Shown here: in pieces, positions 51,400 to 64,000 of the stretch
Layout: every line of letters starts with the position of its first letter
How positions within the stretch are numbered: the stretch's first letter is position 1
Origin: Phaeosaccion multiseriatum
Lineage: Eukaryota; Protista; Ochrophyta, other classes
NCBI GenBank assembly: GCA_965112735.1
Contig: OZ218959.1
Location: 1,860,001 to 1,924,000, forward strand
Direction of reading: 5' to 3'
DNA length: 64,000 nt
The notes under the pieces: generated by a model
What the model was told of the DNA's origin: nothing
The model's database searches: none
What the model saw: only the letters and a program-made list of their open reading frames with translations
Translations under genes and position numbers: made by a program

Positions 51400-52337
51400 A
51401 CCCATTCTTTTCGTGCTGGACAAGAGCGTATTCTCCAACAGCGGAAGCCAATGCGGAGGAAACGCGAATAACTTTGTTGGAAGCAGGCACGAGACAATTG
51501 GCAATACGGCGATGTGTGTTCCCGAGACAGCAAATACAGAGTTGACCCAACCATGTCGAGCGTGATTCGTGACTGTGGCTTGCCTCAGAAGGTTGATGTT
51601 GTCTTGTTTGTCATGCTCGGAGAAGAACACTACGCCGGGCAGTAGTACACTGCGGCCTTTGATCATACGATTCAAGCGACCGTAAGCATTTGGTGGCTTT
51701 GCCCATCCGTCGTTGCAGGGCACATAAGTCACGGCAAGACTTGGGTTCTACTGGAGCAAGCGGAAGAGGAGGAGGACGACGATGTGGTTATTATTTTGAT
51801 GGGTGGGAGGAGAAGGAGGAGGAGAAGCTGATGGGAAGGGAAATCCAGGACATGAAACAAGCAGGCGCCAGAGTATGCAAACACTGGATGGTTTGGCAGC
51901 GAACTTCCCCAGATAGACCGGGAAGGGCTCGTGAATCGAGACATCTTTGTCCGACGCCCTGTGCGGAGGCCAAGCTTGTTTGAGACCACTGCCGATAGCG
52001 CGGGTAGCAGGAGAATTGTTGACGTGGAGGAGCTCCGCAACATTGCTGCGGCAAGGGTCTGGACCACAGACAACACAGGGCACAGGGAGAGTCGCATACT
52101 CTTTGCAGGCGAGCAAACTATGCTGTGCCCACAAGCTCTACAAGGGGGTTTAGAGAATACTCCACAGGCTCTCTGGGTTATTTGGTGCGGCCCTTGAATA
52201 ACCCAGAGAGCCTGTGGAGTATGCTCTAAACCCCCTTGTAGAGCTTGTGGGCACAGCATAGTTCATGTGCCAATGGCGTTTTATCGAGGATCTGAGTCCT
52301 GACGTGAGGTCAACACCAGAGATTCGGGAATACTTTC

Positions 52338-52340
<3 letters not shown>
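51400..52340 (+). pseudogene. Degenerate, probably transposon-derived coding remnant ending in a chromodomain-like segment
   Basis: Stops and frameshifts are present. Removing the hairpin gives ELRNIAAARVWTTDNTGHRESRILFAGEHMCQWRFIEDLSPDVRSTPEIREYF, which has chromo-like spacing. Confidence 0.35.
52116..52263. mobile_element. 148-bp fold-back (hairpin) element: 67-bp arms, 14-nt loop
   Basis: 52116-52182 and 52197-52263 are inverted with one mismatch. Confidence 0.8.
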
Positions 52341-53010
<670 letters not shown>

Positions 53011-53760
53011 AGAGGGGGGCGGGGCGGGGCATTTTTACTCCTGGCATGCACTCCTGGCATGTATGCATGGCAAGAATGGCGGAGGTCAATTCCTGTGAGC
53101 TTCTGCCGGACGTGGTAGTCTCTGCTGCCAACAGGCTGACGACCATGCTAGATGCCACCACCATTCCCTCGACAGATGCGGATGGGCGACGGGGCCCAGT
53201 CGAAGGGATAAAACGCGTTGACGAACCTCCCCAGGGAGGCTGGGAGAGCTGCGCAGAAAAAGGTCACAGAGCACTTGCTCTTCGCTTGAGTTGCTGTGGC
53301 GCCCATGAGCCATAGCTAGGCTTGTGTGGCATTGTGGCGAGAGAGTGGGTGCTGTGGCGGTGTGGGTTTGTCATAATTTGTCAGCACTGTCCCTATTCCT
53401 GAAGCTACCAGTACGCTTTGGCCCCCTAGCTGAGGGTGGTGGGTGGGGCATGTGTACATAACGACGTAAACTTTCTCCGACCCTTTTTTTCCCCCTTTTT
53501 TTTTTTTTTTTTTTAACTTAGGGCCGTTGTGCAAAAAAAGACCAAAAAAAAAAAAAAAAAAGTAGTTTTCGAGCAGAGCGAGTTTACGAGTCGATAGTAT
53601 CGAAAACGTATTTTCGGGAAACGGGGAGGACTGGCAGTCACAGAAAAAATGGATTGAGGCAAGGGCACGCCGCGCCGACCGACGCGAGGGCCCAATGGCC
53701 CGTGCGGCCACGTATGACGCTCAGCCCACCGGGGTAGAGCAAGAATTTAGCATTCACTAC

Positions 53761-54313
53761 TGTAAAAGAGGAGGCGACGCGAGTACGGCGTCGAAAGAGT
53801 TGTAGCAAGTGCCGAAGAGCTCAGCGCGGTGAGAAGGACAGCGAAGGGGCGGAGCAGCCCAGCAGTCCACCGCGCGAAGGAGACGGCAGCGACAGCAAAA
53901 GTTTCCGGGGGACGCCGCTATACGAGAAGGGGATCCGGGACTTTCTACGAGGCGTATCTTTTCAGATCAGCCGTATTTTGTGGTCTGGAGAGGAGGCACC
54001 GCAAGTTCAGCGTTGAGAGTCGTCACAAGTATTTCAGTGCTCAGCACGGTAAGGGCAGCATGGGGCAGCCCAGCAGTCACGAGCATGCGGGCGGTGGCTC
54101 GAGTGTCGAAGGCAATTGCCACTCTAGGTGGGGTTTTCACCGCCCACACACGGACCAAGACGACGATGGGGGATAGAGAGTACAGCAGAAGGCAGCGCCG
54201 CATCAGCGGGCTGCGATGCGACGTGCAGTACGACAGATGATGGGAGTGGCGTAGCAGCTCCAAGTACAGCAGCAGAAGGCAGCGCCGCAACAGCGGGCTG
54301 CGATGCGACGTGC
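53761..54313. mobile_element. Probable older repeat/LTR-like segment interrupted by the gag-only element
   Basis: Begins with TGTAA. Contains a ~50-bp direct repeat (54179-54227 and 54262-54313) whose second copy is cut exactly at the LTR. Confidence 0.35.
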
Positions 54314-54526
54314 TGTGGAAAGTCAGTCGTATGTCAGTGGCCCAGGCCTAGGCAACGCAGTGAGAAACGGTGCCCGTTTCTCACTATCCTCCTGTAGGTG
54401 GTCGTTTAGGACAGTGCATAGATAAGCTAATAGATACAAGGCCGGCTGTCAGGCTAGCTTTGGGGTGCTGCTACCTTATCTGTGTGTCTAGTCCGTTTCG
54501 TGGAGGTCTAAGCACGACTTTCCACA
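54314..54526 (+). repeat. 5' LTR of the gag-only element
   Basis: Identical to 62147-62359. Confidence 0.92.
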
Positions 54527-55002
54527 ACCCCAAAGCTCGAAGACAGTTTGGCACTTGGCCAATAGGCTCAGCAGAGGGAGGCTTTGAGTTCATCGTGCGC
54601 TAGACTAGCACGTGGACGTTTTTGGTTAGTGTCCAAGGCACGGACACGCCACAGCTTGCTCCGTCAGGGGCGTTTAGCTTAATTAGCTTTGCTTGGGAAC
54701 CGGTGTTGTGATAAGTATCGCCATTTGTGACTGAGCACTATATCGACGTACAATATCGATGTGGATATCGATATTCATGTATGGCCACGGCCATCACTTC
54801 CTTGAACGCATCTCTCAGTAGGTATTATTAATACACGAGTTGACACTACTCTAGCTTGTCCCTGTCATCGTAGAGGAGATATCGCAACACGACAGCTGTC
54901 GCGACACTTCACAGCTAGCTGGTTCTACGTAGTCGGCGACGGCACACAGGCGAGTTTTGGTCGGATAACTCAAGTGAGAGAGAAGGAGTCCTTTCGTTAG
55001 CC

Positions 55003-55971
55003 ATGCCAGGCGCGGAAGAAGAAGGCGTTGAAAAGGCGGACGCAGCGGCGCCCGTCAGTGCGAGTTCCGCGATAGAAGGAGACGCACAGCAGCAGATGGC
55101 TGAAATGATGGAAAAGATGATAGCGGCAGCGTTGGCCAAACACATCACACAGCAAGGAGTGCCCACGGCAGCGGCCGCAGCACCAGTCACTATCTCCTCA
55201 GTCGGAGGAACAGTGACCCCCAGCGGGGGGGGGAGTACAGCACAGCAGCTGCTAGAACTCACGTTCAAGCCGAAGAACAATGAGTTTGACAAGAAGTTGG
55301 AATCGGAGGGAGTGATGCCTCTCTTGCGATTTATGCGAGCGGTCACGGATCACATAGGGGGGATGGGGGCAAAGGCATTCTTGGTGGATAGTGATAAGAT
55401 CCCCAACGCAGACGACGCCTCCCGGGACTCTAAGTATGCCCTGACGTTCAGTCTGTACCAACAGACGGGCCTCAAGATTTTGGAGGCCATTCCCTCGGAC
55501 ATGAGGGATGCCATAGAAGAACGCACTCGCACAGCGCGGTTCCAAGTGGACCTGGTACTATTGATGCAGGCAATCAAGGAGGCAGTGATGGGGAGCACGC
55601 AGTCACAGCGACAAGAGTTTCTCACCTCCGAGATGCACGATCTGAGGCCAGGGGTGGGGGAGACGGGACTTGCCTACCTCAACAAGTTTCTCCAACTCAA
55701 CGTGTTGATGACGGAGGAGCAGCTTCCTATGTCCTACTCCATCATCAAGGACAAGTTCCTCAGGCGTATGGGGCAGAGATGGGAGTCGTTCGGCCAAGTG
55801 CACGGTCATTCGGTAGAGACAGAGGACGAGTTTAATCGGTTCAAACAGCAAGTGCAGCGGTTTGACAGTGACCTCCAAGCGCAAGCGAGGGAGGCGGGAG
55901 AGGACCTTGAGCGGGGCCTTTTCCACATTTACCAGCAAAGGCAGAAGACACAGCAACCAGCAGGGGGGTAG
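55003..55971 (+). CDS. Copia gag (capsid part)
   Basis: First ORF after the LTR, with an MHR-like LRPGVGETGLAYLNKF motif; ends in TAG. Confidence 0.8.
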   Translation: MPGAEEEGVEKADAAAPVSASSAIEGDAQQQMAEMMEKMIAAALAKHITQQGVPTAAAAAPVTISSVGGTVTPSGGGSTAQQLLELTFKPKNNEFDKKLESEGVMPLLRFMRAVTDHIGGMGAKAFLVDSDKIPNADDASRDSKYALTFSLYQQTGLKILEAIPSDMRDAIEERTRTARFQVDLVLLMQAIKEAVMGSTQSQRQEFLTSEMHDLRPGVGETGLAYLNKFLQLNVLMTEEQLPMSYSIIKDKFLRRMGQRWESFGQVHGHSVETEDEFNRFKQQVQRFDSDLQAQAREAGEDLERGLFHIYQQRQKTQQPAGG

Positions 55972-56530
55972 ACAGACCACCACAGGGGCAGGAGAGAAAG
56001 ATCGGTCCAACACACGCTGTTACAGGTGTGGGAGAAAGGGGCACATGCGGACGACGTGTCCGTCCAAGGAGGAGCTGTGTTTCAACTGCCACAAGCCGGG
56101 GCACCAGCGTGCAGACTGCCCAAACAGCAGGAAGAAGAAAGATGGCGAGCATGTGGAAGGCTCCACCAGCGCCATTTTCAGCATTCCGTGGACGCTACAG
56201 GAGAGGGGGAGCGGCCATTCTCTCTACCATATGTCCAAGCTGAAGTCGGGGGCGGATGGCACACGGCAGGGGCTCGCAGACAGCGGATCGGCGCTCAATG
56301 TGTGGCCCAACTTGGATGGACTGTACGATTTCTGCGCTCATCAGAGTTTAGTGCAACTCGCAGACGGCAAGTCGCACGCGCAGATAATGGGCAAAGGGAA
56401 GGTGAACATCAGCTACGTCTCCAACGACGGCAAAAGAGGACTGAAGGGGCTGGAGGTAGTGGTGTCGCCAGACGTACCTTTCTGCATTTTTGCAGAGAAG
56501 AACCTCTCAGACCTACTGGGGGGAGCGCAA
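55912..56530 (+). CDS. Copia nucleocapsid (2x CCHC) and aspartic protease, in the +1 frame relative to gag
   Basis: CYRCGRKGHMRTTC, CFNCHKPGHQRADC, LADSGSA and VQLADG...GKG. Confidence 0.85.
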
Positions 56531-58152
56531 GGCCAGCGGGGAAGCCAGTCTATTTCGGCCCCTCAGCAGACGCACCAGAGACGGTGCACACGACGCAGGA
56601 CCCAGAGCTGGGGCTTGACATGCTACAATTCAAGATCGAGGAGGCCACGGAGCAGTGGAGTGATTACATGACTTACCACTGCAAGAAGGGCCACCGCAAC
56701 GATCAAGAACTACGGCGACAGGCCAAGCTGGAGGGCGTGACACTGTGCGGGAAGAGGGCGCCGTGCAAGACTTGCGCAGAGGTGAAGATGACGAAGGCAG
56801 CTCAGAGTAAGCAGTTCATCGACTACCCCAAGGCACCGCTGGCACAGGTAACGCTCGACACCATTCCTCTCGAAGGAGAGCACGTGTTGCAGGCGTGCTG
56901 CCCGCACACGGGTATGGGCTGGTGCAGGAAGGTGGGGGGAAAGACGGAGGCGCACTTCCAGAGCGTGTATGACGACCTCAACACCACAGTATTCATTCCA
57001 GGGGAGAGGACAGCGGGGTACAAGGTGCAGTGTCTGTCAGCAGACAACGGATCGGAGCTCATCAAGACGAAGGCAGCGAAGAAGATGCTCTACTCCCAGG
57101 GCATTGAGGTCAAGCTGACGGACCCCAATTGTCAAGCGCAGAACGGACTGAACGAGGCTCGACACAAGGAGCTGGCGCGAATGTCTATTCTTTTCATTGA
57201 GGAGGCGAAGCTGGAGGAGCACTCGAAGCAGCTGAGGTTCGTAGCGTACAAGTTGGCGCAGCTTCTCTACAACACCAGGTGCAGGAGGGGGCAGCAGCAG
57301 TCCCCCTACGAGCTGTATTTCAAGCGCAAGCCTGACCTACAGCACCTACACATCTTCGGAGAGCAGGCGAAGGTGCGGGTGGGCAACAAGAAGCACAAGC
57401 AGTGGCACAACGACAAGACGCACTCGGCAGTGTACGTGGGACAGAGCCCCAACCACAGATCAGCCTGTCTCCTTTTCTACATCCCTTCACAGAAGCGGTT
57501 CATCTCCAGCTCGTCCTACACATTCGTGACGAACCGCAGACACGACGGCACGGTGTTCGGGAGTCACGTGGAGAAGGGGAAGCTACCAGAGACAGCGGAG
57601 AAGGAGGATGACAGCGAGGACGAGGACCAGCCCTCGAGCAGCGGGAGCAGCAGCAGGAGCAGCAGCGGGAGCAGCAGCAGGAGCAGCAGCAGGAGCAGCA
57701 GCGGGAGCAGCAGCAGGAGCAGCAGCAGGAGCAGCAGCAGTAGCGCGAGCGGGGGAGGTGGGGGCGGGACCAAGAGTGGAACCGTCACATGGAACACGAG
57801 ATTAGAGGAGGCACAGCCAGCCCCACAGCAGCAACAGACATCACGCTGGGAACAGGTTCTCACCCGAGAGTTCGTGGAGAAGTTACAACTCGAAGGAGAA
57901 GGCCTGGAGCGACGTCAGCACGCCGAGCGGCAACAGAGGGAGCAGACGGCAAAGCAGCAACAGAGAGAGCAGCAGAAACAGCAAGTAGAACAGGCAGAGC
58001 AGCAGCAGGAAGAGCCAACGCAGCAGGCTGAGCCGCCAGAGAGAGGCAAACTCTGGACATACGAGGTGGCCAAAGATGGCGACAAGGGAGCCAAGGAGCA
58101 CGACTGGGGCCACGATCCCAGCCTGGGCCGCACGCGTAGCGGCAAGCACTGA
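56520..58152 (+). CDS. Copia integrase
   Basis: HCKKGH...CKTC, TLDT, ADNGSE, QNGLNE, SPYELYF and LHIFG; ends in TGA at 58150-58152. Confidence 0.88.
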
Positions 58153-59796
58153 CATGCTGTCTCCTCCATACTAGGCCCACTCTTTCTGATGCCAGGCCTA
58201 AAGGAGAGCGAGGTACCGATACCGCGGTCTCTGGCCCAGGCTCAAGCAGGAGAGTACGCGGAGCAATGGACGGAGGCGTACTGGGCAGAGCTCAACGCGA
58301 TCGAGCAACGCCAGGTATGGGAGGAGGTTGATTATCAAGAGGGGATGAATGTGCTGCATACAGTCATGCTATTCAGAGCAAAGGTGACTGGGGGATTTGT
58401 GGATAGGCTCAAGTGTCGATTTGTCGTGATGGGGAACGAGCAGATCGAGGGGGAGGATTACTTTGATACCTTTGCACCAGTGGTGGGGAGCTCGACGATG
58501 AAGATGTTCTTTGCTATCACGTGCCAGAAGAAGTGGGTATTGGAGTTTGCAGATGTGGAGACGGCTTTCCTGCATGCACCTCTGCATGAGGGGGAGTACG
58601 TGTACATTAGAGCACCAGAGGGCATGAGAAAGTTCGGGAAGGTGCTGAGGCTGTTGAAGAGTCTGTACGGTCTTCATCAGTCTCCCAAGAGGTGGAACGA
58701 GACAGTGGTGGCATTTCTACTCGCAATGGGGTGGGTACAGTGCCCAGTGGATCCGTGTCTGTTCGCCAGGTTCGAGGAGGGGGAGCTAATAGGGCTCATC
58801 ATTCTATATGTAGACGACCTAGGAGGGTCAGGGGAGGGAAATCTCATTGACTGCACTTTCAAGGAGATTGACGAGCGTTTCAAGTTGAAGCGTTTGGGAT
58901 CGAATGTGGGGAAATTTCTGGGAGTTGAAGTTGACTACGCATTCGAGGCGGGACAGCTCAGGCTTTCGCTAGGAGGGTATCTTAGAGCGATGCTTGAGAA
59001 GTTCGACATGACGGAGGTACCTGTGTACGGCTCACCAGCAGAGCAGGGGGTACATTTGTCAGTGGGTATGGAGCCAAGCACCACAGAGGAGGAGGAATTC
59101 ATGCAGGACAAACCATACTGCTCAGCGGTAGGGTCAATCCTATGGGTTGCCAACTGGGTGAGGCTTGATGTATCCTTCGCCATCATGCAGTGTGCTCGTT
59201 TTATGAAGAGGCCGGGGCCTCGACACTGGGCAGCATTGCAGCGCATTTTCGGGTACTTTAGAGGTAGTTTAGACTTGGGAATTGAGTTTGATCGAGAGGC
59301 GGGGCTTCATCTGGAGGCATACGCAGACTCGAGCTGGGCAGATGACGTCGACAGGCGCAGGAGCTCAGGGGGATACGTCGTGACATTCGGCGGGGGAGTG
59401 ATTGCTCACAAGGCAACACTATTTAAGGTCATAGCACAGTGCTCTATGGAGAGTGAGTACATGGCCGCAGCGGAAGCAGTGAAGGAGTTGCTGTTTCACA
59501 GAGGGATTCTGGAGTTTCTGTTTCCAGGAGCCAACATGACGGAGTCGATTGTGCACGAGGACAATCAAGGGTGCATTCAGATGGCAAATGGCAACGCGGG
59601 CACCAAGCGCGTACGTCACATCGACATTCGTTATCATTTCCTGCAGTACCACGTGGACAAGGGACACGTTCGGTTTCAGTACATCAGCACAAAGGACCAG
59701 CTTGGGGACATCATGACCAAGGCATTGGCACCTCAGGTACACAGCGGTCTGGCGGGGCAGATGCTCAAGAAGGGAGACAGGAAAGGGGGGGACTAG
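58153..59796 (+). CDS. Copia reverse transcriptase and RNase H (same frame as the integrase, after the TGA)
   Basis: KCRFVVMG, DVETAFL, SLYGLHQSP, YVDD, YADSSWA, EDNQ, RHIDIRYH and GDIMTK. Confidence 0.95.
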   Translation, partial: HAVSSILGPLFLMPGLKESEVPIPRSLAQAQAGEYAEQWTEAYWAELNAIEQRQVWEEVDYQEGMNVLHTVMLFRAKVTGGFVDRLKCRFVVMGNEQIEGEDYFDTFAPVVGSSTMKMFFAITCQKKWVLEFADVETAFLHAPLHEGEYVYIRAPEGMRKFGKVLRLLKSLYGLHQSPKRWNETVVAFLLAMGWVQCPVDPCLFARFEEGELIGLIILYVDDLGGSGEGNLIDCTFKEIDERFKLKRLGSNVGKFLGVEVDYAFEAGQLRLSLGGYLRAMLEKFDMTEVPVYGSPAEQGVHLSVGMEPSTTEEEEFMQDKPYCSAVGSILWVANWVRLDVSFAIMQCARFMKRPGPRHWAALQRIFGYFRGSLDLGIEFDREAGLHLEAYADSSWADDVDRRRSSGGYVVTFGGGVIAHKATLFKVIAQCSMESEYMAAAEAVKELLFHRGILEFLFPGANMTESIVHEDNQGCIQMANGNAGTKRVRHIDIRYHFLQYHVDKGHVRFQYISTKDQLGDIMTKALAPQVHSGLAGQMLKKGDRKGGD

Positions 59797-60614
59797 TTTT
59801 AGTTCAGTAGTTTTAGTATGAGGTTTTCAGGACTTTGTCTCGGGGGGGTTTTAGGACAAGTCAGGTGTTTCCTCATTGTGTTTGTGGTAGAGTGTCAGCT
59901 ATCAAGAGAGATAGTGATTCAGTCATAGGAGGGTGTTGTGATAAGTATCGCCATTTGTGACTGAGCACTATATCGACGTACAATATCGATGTGGATATCG
60001 ATATTCATGTATGGCCACGGCCATCACTTCCTTGAACGCATCTCTCAGTAGGTATTATTAATACACGAGTTGACACTACTCTAGCTTGTCCCTGTCATCG
60101 TAGAGGAGATATCGCAACAACCGGTGGGAGAATTTATTTGTGGGAGAATTTATTGGTTGGCTTTGAAAGAGTGGCACAGCAGCGCTACCGTGGATCGGCA
60201 GCAAGAGGTAGCTAGGGATATTGCAAGGAGCAGCTGCAGGGGCAGCAGCAGGAGGCACGGAAGGATTGGCGAGCAGCTGCAGGGGCAGCAGCAAAGGATT
60301 GGATACAGCAGCTGCAGGGGCAGCAGCAGGAGGCACGGGTATCCGCTATACTTAATCAGAGGGGACCGCTGATTTAGAGGTTAGCGGCAGGAGATACAGC
60401 AGGCTTGGCTGGAGAGGCAGGGGGCGCAGCAGCAGGTGTTGGATACCGCAGCAGCTGCAGAGGCAGCAGCAGCAGCAGCAGGCACGGATATCAGGCATAA
60501 TTAGGCACGCTCGGAGGGAGCAGCTGCAGGGGCGCAGCAAGAGGGAAGATGCCGGCATAGCGCGGCGATCGGCTGGCACAGAGTAAGCGTACTGGCTGGT
60601 CCCAGGAGGAACCG

Positions 60615-61880
60615 ATGGGGGATCACGACATGGTCAATCGGTTGATGGAGGAGCTGCATGGAATCAGGATGGACCTTGCAGCACTTCCGGTGCTACTGGG
60701 CCAGCTATTGGGTCGGGATCCAAGGCAGCAGTCGGAGGTGCAGGTAGCTGCTGCACAGGTGGGGTCGGGCAGCAAGCAGAAACGATCTAAGGTCGACTGT
60801 GGGGCAGGGCAAGTCTTTTCGTGCTTTCACTGCAAGAAGGAGCACTGTCTCTCTCGCTGCCCTACCGAACCGACCACCGGAGCCATGGTGAGGAAGATGG
60901 TGGATGCAGGGAAGCGGTACGGCTTGGGTACAGCTTCCCAGGTGGTGGTGACGCTTGTGCAGCGCACTGAGCAATACAAGCGCGTCCTTGCTCAGCTGGT
61001 GAAGGCCGTGACGACGACAGGGCAGGCAGCACAGCGCAGAGCCTCGAAGGAGTTGCAGACGCTAGAGCTGACGGTGGCGGCCGCGGCGCAGTCTCGGCTT
61101 CGGGTGGCGCAAGCGCAGGCTCAGGAGGAGCAGGTAGAGCAGGCTGGCGTCACGCTTGCAGAGGGGTCAGTGTCTGCTGCGGTCCTCGAGCGGGAGCGGC
61201 AGGAGCGCGAGTCTGTTTGGCTGGAGGAGGAACAGTTGGAGCGGGCGCGTGTGTGTGCGGCTCAGGAGCGGGTGGAGAGGCGCCGCGTCGGGGAGAAAGA
61301 GAGACGGCAGCAGGCGCAACAAGCTGCCTTGGCTGAGGAAGCTCAGCGCAAGCTGCAAGAGGTACACACGCAGGCTCAAGCGGAGAGCACGCGGGTACAG
61401 CAAGTGCGGGACTGGCAAGAGCGGGAGGACGCACTGCGGGCTGTGGCTCAGCCTGTAGTGCGGGTGAATGGTGTTCTCAGTGGTCTTGGTTCCACTACCG
61501 AAGTTGGTGCGCGGCCAAAGAGGAGGGGGCGGCGGTCGAAGAAGCGCAAGGTAAGGCCCGACGGGGTCAGGGATCCGGCAGAGCGGCAGCTTGAGGAGGA
61601 GCGCCAGTGGCAGCAGGAGATGGACGCGAGGAAGTGTGATCCGGCAAGGCAGCGCCGGTGGCAGCAGGAGATTGCAGCGGATCGTCCGGCCTGGTTGGAC
61701 CGGCCTCCTCTCTCTCTGAAGGATCGGATGCAGCAAGTGGAAGCGGCGCAGGCGCGGCTGCAGAAGCTGATGGACGAGAAGGCGGCCCAGCTGCTGGCGA
61801 CGGAGCAGGCCGCGCATGGAGTGCCTCGTACGGTTGCAACGCTGGGACAGCAGGTGACGGTGGGGACGAGCCAGCGCTAG
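60615..61880 (+). CDS. 421-aa gag-like protein: CX2CX3HX4C knuckle, long coiled coil, basic NLS-like patch
   Basis: CFHCKKEHCLSRC, a Q/E/R/A-rich helix and RPKRRGRRSKKRK; intact ORF between the LTRs. Confidence 0.7.
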   Translation: MGDHDMVNRLMEELHGIRMDLAALPVLLGQLLGRDPRQQSEVQVAAAQVGSGSKQKRSKVDCGAGQVFSCFHCKKEHCLSRCPTEPTTGAMVRKMVDAGKRYGLGTASQVVVTLVQRTEQYKRVLAQLVKAVTTTGQAAQRRASKELQTLELTVAAAAQSRLRVAQAQAQEEQVEQAGVTLAEGSVSAAVLERERQERESVWLEEEQLERARVCAAQERVERRRVGEKERRQQAQQAALAEEAQRKLQEVHTQAQAESTRVQQVRDWQEREDALRAVAQPVVRVNGVLSGLGSTTEVGARPKRRGRRSKKRKVRPDGVRDPAERQLEEERQWQQEMDARKCDPARQRRWQQEIAADRPAWLDRPPLSLKDRMQQVEAAQARLQKLMDEKAAQLLATEQAAHGVPRTVATLGQQVTVGTSQR

Positions 61881-62146
61881 CGCAGCCGTGCGCAGCCACG
61901 GAGGGTGAGTTTGAGGCCTTGGGCTTTCTCACCCTGCCGTGGCAGGTGTGTGGCAGGGTGACCTGTGGAGTGCCACGTCACACACTGGTGGGTGAGTTTT
62001 GCATATTTCTCATCCGGTTTTTTTGGAAGCAGCATAAAGGGGTTTGCTACAGTCGAGCTTCAGTAGGTGAAAACGCTTGAGTTGCGTGGGGACACGCAAC
62101 AGTCTTGTCAGGGGAGTGTTAGAAGTGCAGGGATGGCTGACGGGGA

Positions 62147-62359
62147 TGTGGAAAGTCAGTCGTATGTCAGTGGCCCAGGCCTAGGCAACGCAGTGAGAAA
62201 CGGTGCCCGTTTCTCACTATCCTCCTGTAGGTGGTCGTTTAGGACAGTGCATAGATAAGCTAATAGATACAAGGCCGGCTGTCAGGCTAGCTTTGGGGTG
62301 CTGCTACCTTATCTGTGTGTCTAGTCCGTTTCGTGGAGGTCTAAGCACGACTTTCCACA
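62147..62359 (+). repeat. 3' (central) LTR of the gag-only element
   Basis: Identical to 54314-54526; followed by ACCCCAAA. Confidence 0.92.
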
Positions 62360-62530
62360 ACCCCAAAACCCCTTTATGCTGCTTCCAAAAAAACCGGATG
62401 AGAAATATGCAAAACTCACCCACCAGTGTGTGACGTGGCACTCCACAGGTCACCCTGCCACACACCTGCCACGGCAGGGTGAGAAAGCCCAAGGCCTCAA
62501 ACTCACCCTCCGTGGCTGCGCACGGCTGCG

Positions 62531-63796
62531 CTAGCGCTGGCTCGTCCCCACCGTCACCTGCTGTCCCAGCGTTGCAACCGTACGAGGCACTCCATGCGCG
62601 GCCTGCTCCGTCGCCAGCAGCTGGGCCGCCTTCTCGTCCATCAGCTTCTGCAGCCGCGCCTGCGCCGCTTCCACTTGCTGCATCCGATCCTTCAGAGAGA
62701 GAGGAGGCCGGTCCAACCAGGCCGGACGATCCGCTGCAATCTCCTGCTGCCACCGGCGCTGCCTTGCCGGATCACACTTCCTCGCGTCCATCTCCTGCTG
62801 CCACTGGCGCTCCTCCTCAAGCTGCCGCTCTGCCGGATCCCTGACCCCGTCGGGCCTTACCTTGCGCTTCTTCGACCGCCGCCCCCTCCTCTTTGGCCGC
62901 GCACCAACTTCGGTAGTGGAACCAAGACCACTGAGAACACCATTCACCCGCACTACAGGCTGAGCCACAGCCCGCAGTGCGTCCTCCCGCTCTTGCCAGT
63001 CCCGCACTTGCTGTACCCGCGTGCTCTCCGCTTGAGCCTGCGTGTGTACCTCTTGCAGCTTGCGCTGAGCTTCCTCAGCCAAGGCAGCTTGTTGCGCCTG
63101 CTGCCGTCTCTCTTTCTCCCCGACGCGGCGCCTCTCCACCCGCTCCTGAGCCGCACACACACGCGCCCGCTCCAACTGTTCCTCCTCCAGCCAAACAGAC
63201 TCGCGCTCCTGCCGCTCCCGCTCGAGGACCGCAGCAGACACTGACCCCTCTGCAAGCGTGACGCCAGCCTGCTCTACCTGCTCCTCCTGAGCCTGCGCTT
63301 GCGCCACCCGAAGCCGAGACTGCGCCGCGGCCGCCACCGTCAGCTCTAGCGTCTGCAACTCCTTCGAGGCTCTGCGCTGTGCTGCCTGCCCTGTCGTCGT
63401 CACGGCCTTCACCAGCTGAGCAAGGACGCGCTTGTATTGCTCAGTGCGCTGCACAAGCGTCACCACCACCTGGGAAGCTGTACCCAAGCCGTACCGCTTC
63501 CCTGCATCCACCATCTTCCTCACCATGGCTCCGGTGGTCGGTTCGGTAGGGCAGCGAGAGAGACAGTGCTCCTTCTTGCAGTGAAAGCACGAAAAGACTT
63601 GCCCTGCCCCACAGTCGACCTTAGATCGTTTCTGCTTGCTGCCCGACCCCACCTGTGCAGCAGCTACCTGCACCTCCGACTGCTGCCTTGGATCCCGACC
63701 CAATAGCTGGCCCAGTAGCACCGGAAGTGCTGCAAGGTCCATCCTGATTCCATGCAGCTCCTCCATCAACCGATTGACCATGTCGTGATCCCCCAT
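62531..63796 (-). CDS. Inverted identical copy of the 421-aa gag-like ORF
   Basis: Translation is identical to 60615-61880. Confidence 0.7.
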   Translation of the reverse strand: MGDHDMVNRLMEELHGIRMDLAALPVLLGQLLGRDPRQQSEVQVAAAQVGSGSKQKRSKVDCGAGQVFSCFHCKKEHCLSRCPTEPTTGAMVRKMVDAGKRYGLGTASQVVVTLVQRTEQYKRVLAQLVKAVTTTGQAAQRRASKELQTLELTVAAAAQSRLRVAQAQAQEEQVEQAGVTLAEGSVSAAVLERERQERESVWLEEEQLERARVCAAQERVERRRVGEKERRQQAQQAALAEEAQRKLQEVHTQAQAESTRVQQVRDWQEREDALRAVAQPVVRVNGVLSGLGSTTEVGARPKRRGRRSKKRKVRPDGVRDPAERQLEEERQWQQEMDARKCDPARQRRWQQEIAADRPAWLDRPPLSLKDRMQQVEAAQARLQKLMDEKAAQLLATEQAAHGVPRTVATLGQQVTVGTSQR

Positions 63797-64000
63797 CGGT
63801 TCCTCCTGGGACCAGCCAGTACGCTTACTCTGTGCCAGCCGATCGCCGCGCTATGCCGGCATCTTCCCTCTTGCTGCGCCCCTGCAGCTGCTCCCTCCGA
63901 GCGTGCCTAATTATGCCTGATATCCGTGCCTGCTGCTGCTGCTGCTGCCTCTGCAGCTGCTGCGGTATCCAACACCTGCTGCTGCGCCCCCTGCCTCTCC

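Follow-up and report, generated by a model that had tools for sequence, protein, structure and literature searches.

Known relatives and a tail-to-tail dimer

Complex long terminal repeat (LTR) retrotransposons flanked by a target-site duplication (TSD) have been attributed to template switching (Sabot & Schulman, 2007, PMC1950507; rice survey, bioRxiv 10.1101/452573). The locus described here lies in a 64,000-nucleotide stretch of Phaeosaccion multiseriatum contig OZ218959.1 (the window; G000:C10:1860001-1924000) and resembles these elements in holding two copies within one TSD pair, with identical outer LTRs, as expected of an aberrant reverse transcription product that was integrated. The published complexes, however, are direct tandems (LTR-int-LTR-int-LTR; PMC1950507; 10.1101/452573), whereas the second copy here is inverted, has no 3′ LTR of its own in place of a shared middle LTR, and is joined to the first at a remnant of the primer-binding site (PBS), such that both outer ends are U3 termini. 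Inverted forms are mentioned in neither publication, and a search of the open-access literature found no inverted or palindromic TSD-flanked LTR dimers. The sequence points to two copies of a small, apparently self-priming LTR retrotransposon, placed tail to tail at the PBS remnant and inserted by one integration; it is very unlikely to be an artefact.

The closest parallel for the priming mode is Tf1 of Schizosaccharomyces pombe, in which roughly half of the complementary DNA (cDNA) retains the whole PBS copy as a single-stranded 3′ extension, and such extensions direct unusual insertions (PMC11042837). As in Tf1, the element's own LTR (R) contains an 11-mer complementary to the PBS, a PBS copy would be left on the plus-strand 3′ end, and tandem copies with a single LTR between them occur in the family. 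Unlike Tf1, which belongs to the Tf1/sushi clade of Ty3/gypsy, the element carries no reverse transcriptase (RT) or integrase (IN) by which it could be placed phylogenetically. The outcomes also differ, those described for Tf1 being tandems and PBS-homology insertions (PMC11042837), while the outcome here is an inverted dimer.

Structure of the palindrome and its junction

All structural and mechanistic evidence comes from the assembled genome (67 Mb); extended coordinates continue those of the window into the next 10 kb (L022, from G000:C10:1924001). Within the window, a repeat finder returned inverted-repeat arms at 60411-62045 and 62366-64000 (1,635 nt, 100% complementary, 320 nt between them). 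A preliminary description of the window had reported this perfect inverted copy, of at least 1,635 bp and including an open reading frame (ORF) of 421 codons, ORF421, and had predicted that the arm would run on past the window without the nested Copia element and end in an inverted LTR plus a TSD. The prediction holds. The palindrome continues beyond the window end, each arm measures 2,311 bp with 100% identity and its own copy of the ORF, and an inverted LTR closes the right arm at extended 64464-64676 (G000:C10:1924676), followed by the TSD GTGC. As reverse complement, the right arm reproduces 60119-62045 (1,927 bp) and then 54313-54705 (393 bp) without a difference; once the Copia element is taken out, arms A and B are identical at all 2,311 bp (Table 1).

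The joint between the copies is defined by a 221-nt direct repeat (54314-54534 = 62147-62367) that comprises the 213-bp LTR (TGTGGAAAGTC...GACTTTCCACA) and ACCCCAAA. The 5′ LTR is followed by ACCCCAAAGCT, and the 3′ LTR by the first 8 nt of that sequence, ACCCCAAA, and then by the inverted internal region. The 3′ LTR is therefore continued at 62360-62367 by PBS sequence and not by host DNA, as the preliminary description had it; the chance probability of an 8-nt PBS match directly after an LTR is about 1.5e-5. The microhomology placed by the same description at 62043-62045 (AAA/TTT) exists as an overlap, but the LTR+PBS match and the inverted arm share 2 nt (AA, 62366-62367) and not 3. The whole junction-spanning query (window 62000-64000) matched at one place only in the 67-Mb genome.

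Element A (+, 54314-62359) is complete, with 8 nt of the 11-nt PBS after it, while element B (-) lacks the 101-nt pre-LTR tail, the 3′ LTR and the Copia element nested in A. The order previously proposed, LTR>-ORF>-LTR>-PBS′-<ORF-<LTR, agrees with both the arm comparison and the extended sequence.

Table 1. Features of the composite locus, in window coordinates unless marked as extended
Feature	Coordinates	Strand	Remarks
Left flank, 1.5 units of 87-bp satellite	54183..54313	.	last 4 nt (54310-54313, GTGC) are the left TSD copy
5′ LTR of A, 213 bp, TGTGGAAAGTC...GACTTTCCACA	54314..54526	+	100% identical to 3′ LTR and to inverted LTR of B
Putative self-primer AGCTTTGGGGT in LTR, Tf1-type	54456..54466	+	exact reverse complement of PBS
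Primer-binding site ACCCCAAAGCT	54527..54537	+	directly after 5′ LTR
Nested Copia, 186-bp identical LTRs, 5-bp TSD ACCGG	54704..60119	+	RVT_2 (2.7e-42), retroviral SH3-like domain
Left arm, contiguous part of stem, 1,927 bp	60119..62045	+	contains ORF421 at 60615-61880
Pre-LTR tail, 101 nt, ending in purine-rich GGGATGGCTGACGGGGA (putative polypurine tract, PPT)	62046..62146	+	in 320-nt loop; missing from arm B
3′ LTR of A, in palindrome loop, 213 bp, TG..CA, 11-bp terminal inverted repeat TGTGGAAAGTC	62147..62359	+	100% identical to 5′ LTR
Junction ACCCCAAA, 8/11 PBS nt	62360..62367	+	2-nt overlap AA (62366-62367) with arm B
Right arm, element B: internal region, PBS, inverted LTR, TSD GTGC	62366..64000, on to extended 64676	-	ORF421 copy at 62531-63796 (-)

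A single insertion into satellite DNA

The composite interrupts an 87-bp satellite that makes up both flanks. On the left it ends ...GCGATGCGACGTGC and on the right it starts GTGCAGTACGACAG, in the same orientation and phase; on the right, GTGC at extended 64677-64680 is followed by resumption of the satellite, so that a 4-bp TSD brackets the whole composite (10.4 kb, or ~4.95 kb before the Copia insertion). Joining the flanks minus one GTGC yields a 48-mer that matches 10 intact satellite units with at most 3 mismatches, and among the offsets tried (0-3, 5, 6 and 8 nt besides 4) only 4 nt gave a match to a satellite unit. Simple copies of the family carry TSDs of the same length (n = 5; CATG, CAAT, TTGT, AGTG and CCAG), and no TSD was found at the locus around A alone or B alone. 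Because one 4-bp TSD surrounds the whole, a satellite unit is restored and neither part has a TSD of its own, the composite was inserted in one piece, with a duplication of the integrase type. Its two outer ends, both of them U3 termini, have the same sequence as U5 ends across the 11-bp terminal inverted repeat. The idea in the preliminary description that the 11-bp terminal repeats let integrase take the composite finds support in this resemblance of the inverted U3 end to U5, and in a TSD of 4 bp as in simple copies. The empty Copia site in arm B indicates that the Copia element arrived after dimer formation. Judging from the zero divergence of arms and LTRs, and from the identical LTRs of the Copia element, the locus is very young.

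Assembly artefacts are known to include perfect long palindromes, made from chimeric fold-back reads, and a chromosomal fold-back that duplicated the region in inverted orientation would also give rise to one. A fold-back read, however, is expected to leave symmetric arms without biological boundaries, and here the arms are asymmetric, with a 320-nt loop between them and the Copia element in just one of the two. The distal arm has its limit precisely at an LTR end, and a single satellite unit is recovered from the flanks once a 4-bp TSD is allowed for. A chromosomal fold-back would have carried the copy into inverted left flank; instead the copy stops at the end of the LTR and the right flank continues the left flank directly, uninverted. 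We regard an origin of either kind as extremely unlikely.

Nested insertion of A into B was rejected, as the 6 nt after the 3′ LTR of A (ACCCCA) are not B sequence and there is neither a second junction nor an inner TSD. The same 6 nt weigh against a related two-step history in which B (-) was already resident in the satellite and an incoming cDNA of A replaced its tail and 3′ LTR by integrase-independent, homology-directed insertion, with the 11-bp terminal repeat as guide at the left end and the PBS tail at the right. Tf1 offers a precedent for integrase-independent, PBS-guided insertion beside resident copies (PMC11042837), and one copy of the present family (L012) is a tandem of the form LTR-int-LTR-PBS... 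Such a history would nevertheless need two separate microhomology events in inverted orientation, and it would have left a 5-nt homology available at the junction (ACCCC) unused, which makes it very improbable.

Two other repeats were observed in the surroundings. About 24 copies of a 14-bp minisatellite (GGTCCTATGGGGAT) interrupt the 87-bp satellite array (L022:677-2260, extended 64677-66260) at extended 65262-65600. Upstream, window positions 52116-52263 hold a 67-nt inverted repeat (99% complementary, 14-nt spacer) that adjoins long (GAT)n/(GGT)n/(GGA)n tracts at 52320-53030.

A small, apparently self-priming family

The repeated element is a 2.6-kb non-autonomous LTR retrotransposon with a single ORF, in which no RT or integrase domain was detected. 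Its 213-bp LTRs are direct and 100% identical and end TGTGG...CCACA (family LTR end, TGTNGAAAGTC), and the expected parts of a retrotransposon are present, with the PBS (54527-54537) after the 5′ LTR and a purine tract, GGGATGGCTGACGGGGA, before the 3′ LTR. The family is small, with 23 LTR-end+PBS sites in 67 Mb, or about 20 loci. Within the genome, ORF421 (421 aa) matches this family only and is mostly intact; it returned no Pfam family above cut-off and no informative protein-atlas neighbour, and holds only a knuckle-like motif (CX2CX3HX4C). The name "gag" for this ORF is a positional guess.

All 11 nt of the PBS are complementary to AGCTTTGGGGT (LTR positions 143-153), and the two are paired in the minimum-energy predicted RNA fold. 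Pairing between CTTTGGGGT and ACCCCAAAG, over at least 9 nt, is kept in two diverged related families. The element appears to prime its own minus strand in the manner of Tf1, through the LTR 11-mer paired with the PBS; the exact complementarity and its conservation in two related families lend weight to the role of primer first suggested for the 11-mer in the preliminary description.

Additional observations concern the relatives and genomic setting of the family. A third related family, with LTR end ...GTTTTACA and PBS ACCCCAAAGGC, has the CTTTGGGGT/ACCCCAAAG pairing (L017:5130-5260, L028:3893-5565). Short units of the sister family (1.5-2 kb) stand in tandem with shared LTRs at L019:5317-8991. 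Integrase matches and copies of the family cluster at G000:C14:2.32-2.75 Mb, C12:1.56-1.68 Mb and C10:0.75-0.83 Mb; these megabase-scale blocks, rich in transposable elements (TEs), may be centromere-like regions.

Related junctions and dimers in the genome

Junctions with LTR+PBS sequence occur at other copies. In L013, the LTR is followed by ACCCCAAAG (9 PBS nt), by the tail from about position 72 and then by LTR-internal-LTR; the TSD is GGTG, and a paralogous intact version of the empty site is present in L014. L014 itself has two such junctions, one joining LTR + ACCCCAAAGCT (11 PBS nt) to an internal site and the other joining LTR + ACCCCAAAG (9 PBS nt) to LTR position 73. In L025 (L025:3266-5270 = G000:C1:1799265-1801269), a family-1 LTR + ACCCCAAAGC meets, through a 10-nt homology, an inverted sister-family element exactly at the self-primer site of that element. 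Both flanks of L025 are (GGGA)n, and a GGAG duplication there is compatible but uninformative. L027 (L027:3805-4150 = G000:C16:506804-507149) is an LTR hairpin in which U3 and the 11-mer self-primer are followed by a complete inverted LTR; its arms are ~96% identical, one of them with a 27-nt deletion. No TSD was found at L014 or L027.

Common to the series is a plus-strand 3′ end with 8-11 nt of copied primer that runs on along an incorrect template. In four of these cases (L013, L014 junction 1, L025 and L027), what precedes the junction is LTR+PBS and nothing else, which corresponds in size to plus-strand strong-stop DNA; two of the four use the 10-11-nt complementarity between PBS and self-primer. 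Since all four have exactly LTR+PBS upstream, they point to the reverse transcription stage, and mis-transferred LTR+PBS junctions, as read from these copies, seem to be a habit of the family.

A second inverted dimer of the same family, L015 (L015:3019-8281 = G000:C12:1587018-1592280), is arranged head to head and flanked by the TSD CCAC, with an intact empty site at C14:1025943 (0 mismatches). At its joint, a complete U3 terminus meets a PPT-extended U3 end, with a 56-nt extension of the PPT region and one extra base. The halves are different variants, separated by 29 sites and three indels that are concentrated in the last 500 nt, and so cannot derive from one molecule. Because L015 is built from two variants, intermolecular dimers do form and integrate in this family. 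Among candidates for other palindromic copies, which the preliminary description had suggested looking for, the opposite-strand matches of the junction-spanning query proved to be ordinary copies.

L016 was rejected as a palindrome, as it consists of two independent insertions 135 bp apart with their own TSDs (AGTG and CCAG). The sister element in L025 has a 30-nt extension of the PPT region whose start, TGTTAGAAGTG, resembles an LTR terminus. Three copies (L020:3339-3482, L021:5373-5516 and L014:5112-5252) have a 5′ LTR truncated so that it begins between LTR positions 69 and 73; truncation recurs at this point, which might be a favoured site of switching or priming.

Origin of the dimer

We consider it somewhat probable that the dimer, inserted by a single integration, arose during reverse transcription, by pairing of the plus-strand 3′ ends of two sister cDNAs. 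In a Tf1-like cycle, the plus strand would end in the LTR and a copy of the primer, that is, in a 3′ PBS tail. A tail with 8 nt copied would miss the normal second transfer and could use 2 nt (AA/TT) to pair with another plus strand, at the equivalent of 62045, 101 nt upstream of the 3′ LTR; this other strand would most likely be the growing plus strand of a sister cDNA in the same particle. By mutual extension, each 3′ end would copy its partner as far as the partner's 5′ end, and the product would be a duplex dimer joined tail to tail, LTR-ORF-tail-LTR-PBS8-inverted(ORF-LTR), with U3 at both outer ends. Both ends would then read ...GACTTTCCACA-3′, such that integrase could insert the dimer as one unit with the usual 4-bp duplication, and the Copia element would have landed in arm A afterwards. 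We infer the strand-level steps, the timing in reverse transcription and the participation of two molecules instead of one.

Several features argue for this sequence of events. The stop of the inverted arm at the LTR terminus is expected of a plus strand copied all the way to the 5′ end and is not expected from a chromosomal event, and the junction holds primer-derived sequence, ACCCCAAA, for which the chromosome offers no source at this position. For the arm to end precisely there, the template must have been a plus strand with a complete 5′ LTR, which places the event late. Other features weigh against it. Cellular end joining would just as typically leave a 2-nt microhomology and a PBS trimmed to 8/11 nt; the start of transcription at 54456 is putative; and a genome-wide scan for integrase gave 71 matches, none tied to this LTR (the matching elements were not compared), such that no RT/IN partner was identified. 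The identity of the arms is compatible with intramolecular fold-back, though it says little either way, because the closest other copy of the family is itself just 1 mismatch and 1 indel away.

The main rival is end joining by the host, in which a full-length cDNA with an unprocessed U5 end still bearing the PBS tail would have been ligated to a second cDNA whose distal 314 nt were absent or resected, either before integration or after concerted insertion of the U3 ends of two molecules, with the cell sealing the break. Such ligation would account for the 2-nt microhomology and the trimmed PBS, and equally well for the 4-bp TSD; PBS and PPT remnants are known at ligated cDNA ends (PMC11042837), and the joint of L015, with one extra nucleotide between two variants, resembles a ligated, circle-junction-like joint. 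Priming and extension nevertheless give a better fit to the four sibling junctions with exactly LTR+PBS upstream, two of them using 10-11 nt of complementarity, and we view end joining as a serious but unlikely source of the dimer.

Snap-back self-priming by reverse transcriptase is seen chiefly in vitro or on strong-stop DNA and involves tens to hundreds of bases. As in snap-back, the 3′ end at this locus would have paired by a few bases with a same-sense strand, its extension yielding inverted sequence; the differences are that 2.3 kb was copied here and that the product was integrated. In a strictly intramolecular fold-back, a PBS-tailed 3′ end would loop over 320 nt onto its own strand and copy it to the 5′ end, and the hairpin would integrate. 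The identity of the 2,311-bp arms, the termination of the inverted arm exactly at the strand's 5′ end, and L027, which resembles an LTR+PBS strand that primed itself from its own 11-mer, are all in keeping with such a fold-back. Two cDNAs are favoured over a hairpin, however, because the 4-bp TSD needs two 3′-CA ends, whereas a closed hairpin has one 3′ end and the extended form has no complementary strand. The template region must also have been single-stranded, L027 is without a TSD, and strong-stop DNA does not include position 62045. Fold-back in a single molecule is thus rather improbable, and the version put forward in the preliminary description, in which plus-strand strong-stop DNA folded back on itself, is not borne out, given a template with a complete 5′ LTR and a hairpin that offers one 3′ end.

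Hairpin RNA and implications for the family

TE hairpins act as silencing triggers: the case is established for Mu killer in maize and has been proposed for a nested antisense EVD in Arabidopsis (PMC11624286). Like both, the present locus duplicates an active TE in inverted orientation and has a promoter directed into the antisense arm. It differs in origin, as Mu killer and EVD arose by chromosomal rearrangement or nested insertion, while the locus here was apparently made before integration. The long inverted duplication lies downstream of the promoter side, with a stem of 1,927 contiguous bp plus 385 bp. Because B has a promoter-side LTR but no 3′ LTR of its own, its transcripts would run through the loop into antisense A and form a hairpin whose perfect stem would span 1,927 bp. 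Domains of Piwi, RNase III and RdRP (RNA-dependent RNA polymerase) are encoded in the genome, and the locus could be expected to yield hairpin RNA and small interfering RNA.

A broader and rather doubtful proposal is that self-priming carries a hazard: a free PBS tail, complementary to the LTR of its own element, would repeatedly misprime same-sense strands, the resulting inverted dimers and LTR hairpins would still integrate, as the LTR ends are inverted repeats, and the family would thereby generate its own brake by RNA interference (RNAi). If so, each such product would be an obligate hairpin-RNA gene against its own family, arm B having a promoter and no terminator, and errors of replication would be coupled to RNAi silencing.

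Natural, datable fossils of reverse transcription accidents are rare, and the junction described here retains primer-derived bases. It belongs to a small family that holds a graded series of errors, from mis-transferred LTR+PBS units through an LTR hairpin to head-to-head and tail-to-tail dimers. The family provides sequence-level support for Tf1-like self-priming outside fungi and animals, and shows that, where LTR termini form inverted repeats, integrase accepts a molecule with U3 at both ends (this locus) or with U5 at both ends (L015). The dimer thereby offers a concrete locus for asking whether a retrotransposon's replication error makes its own silencing hairpin.

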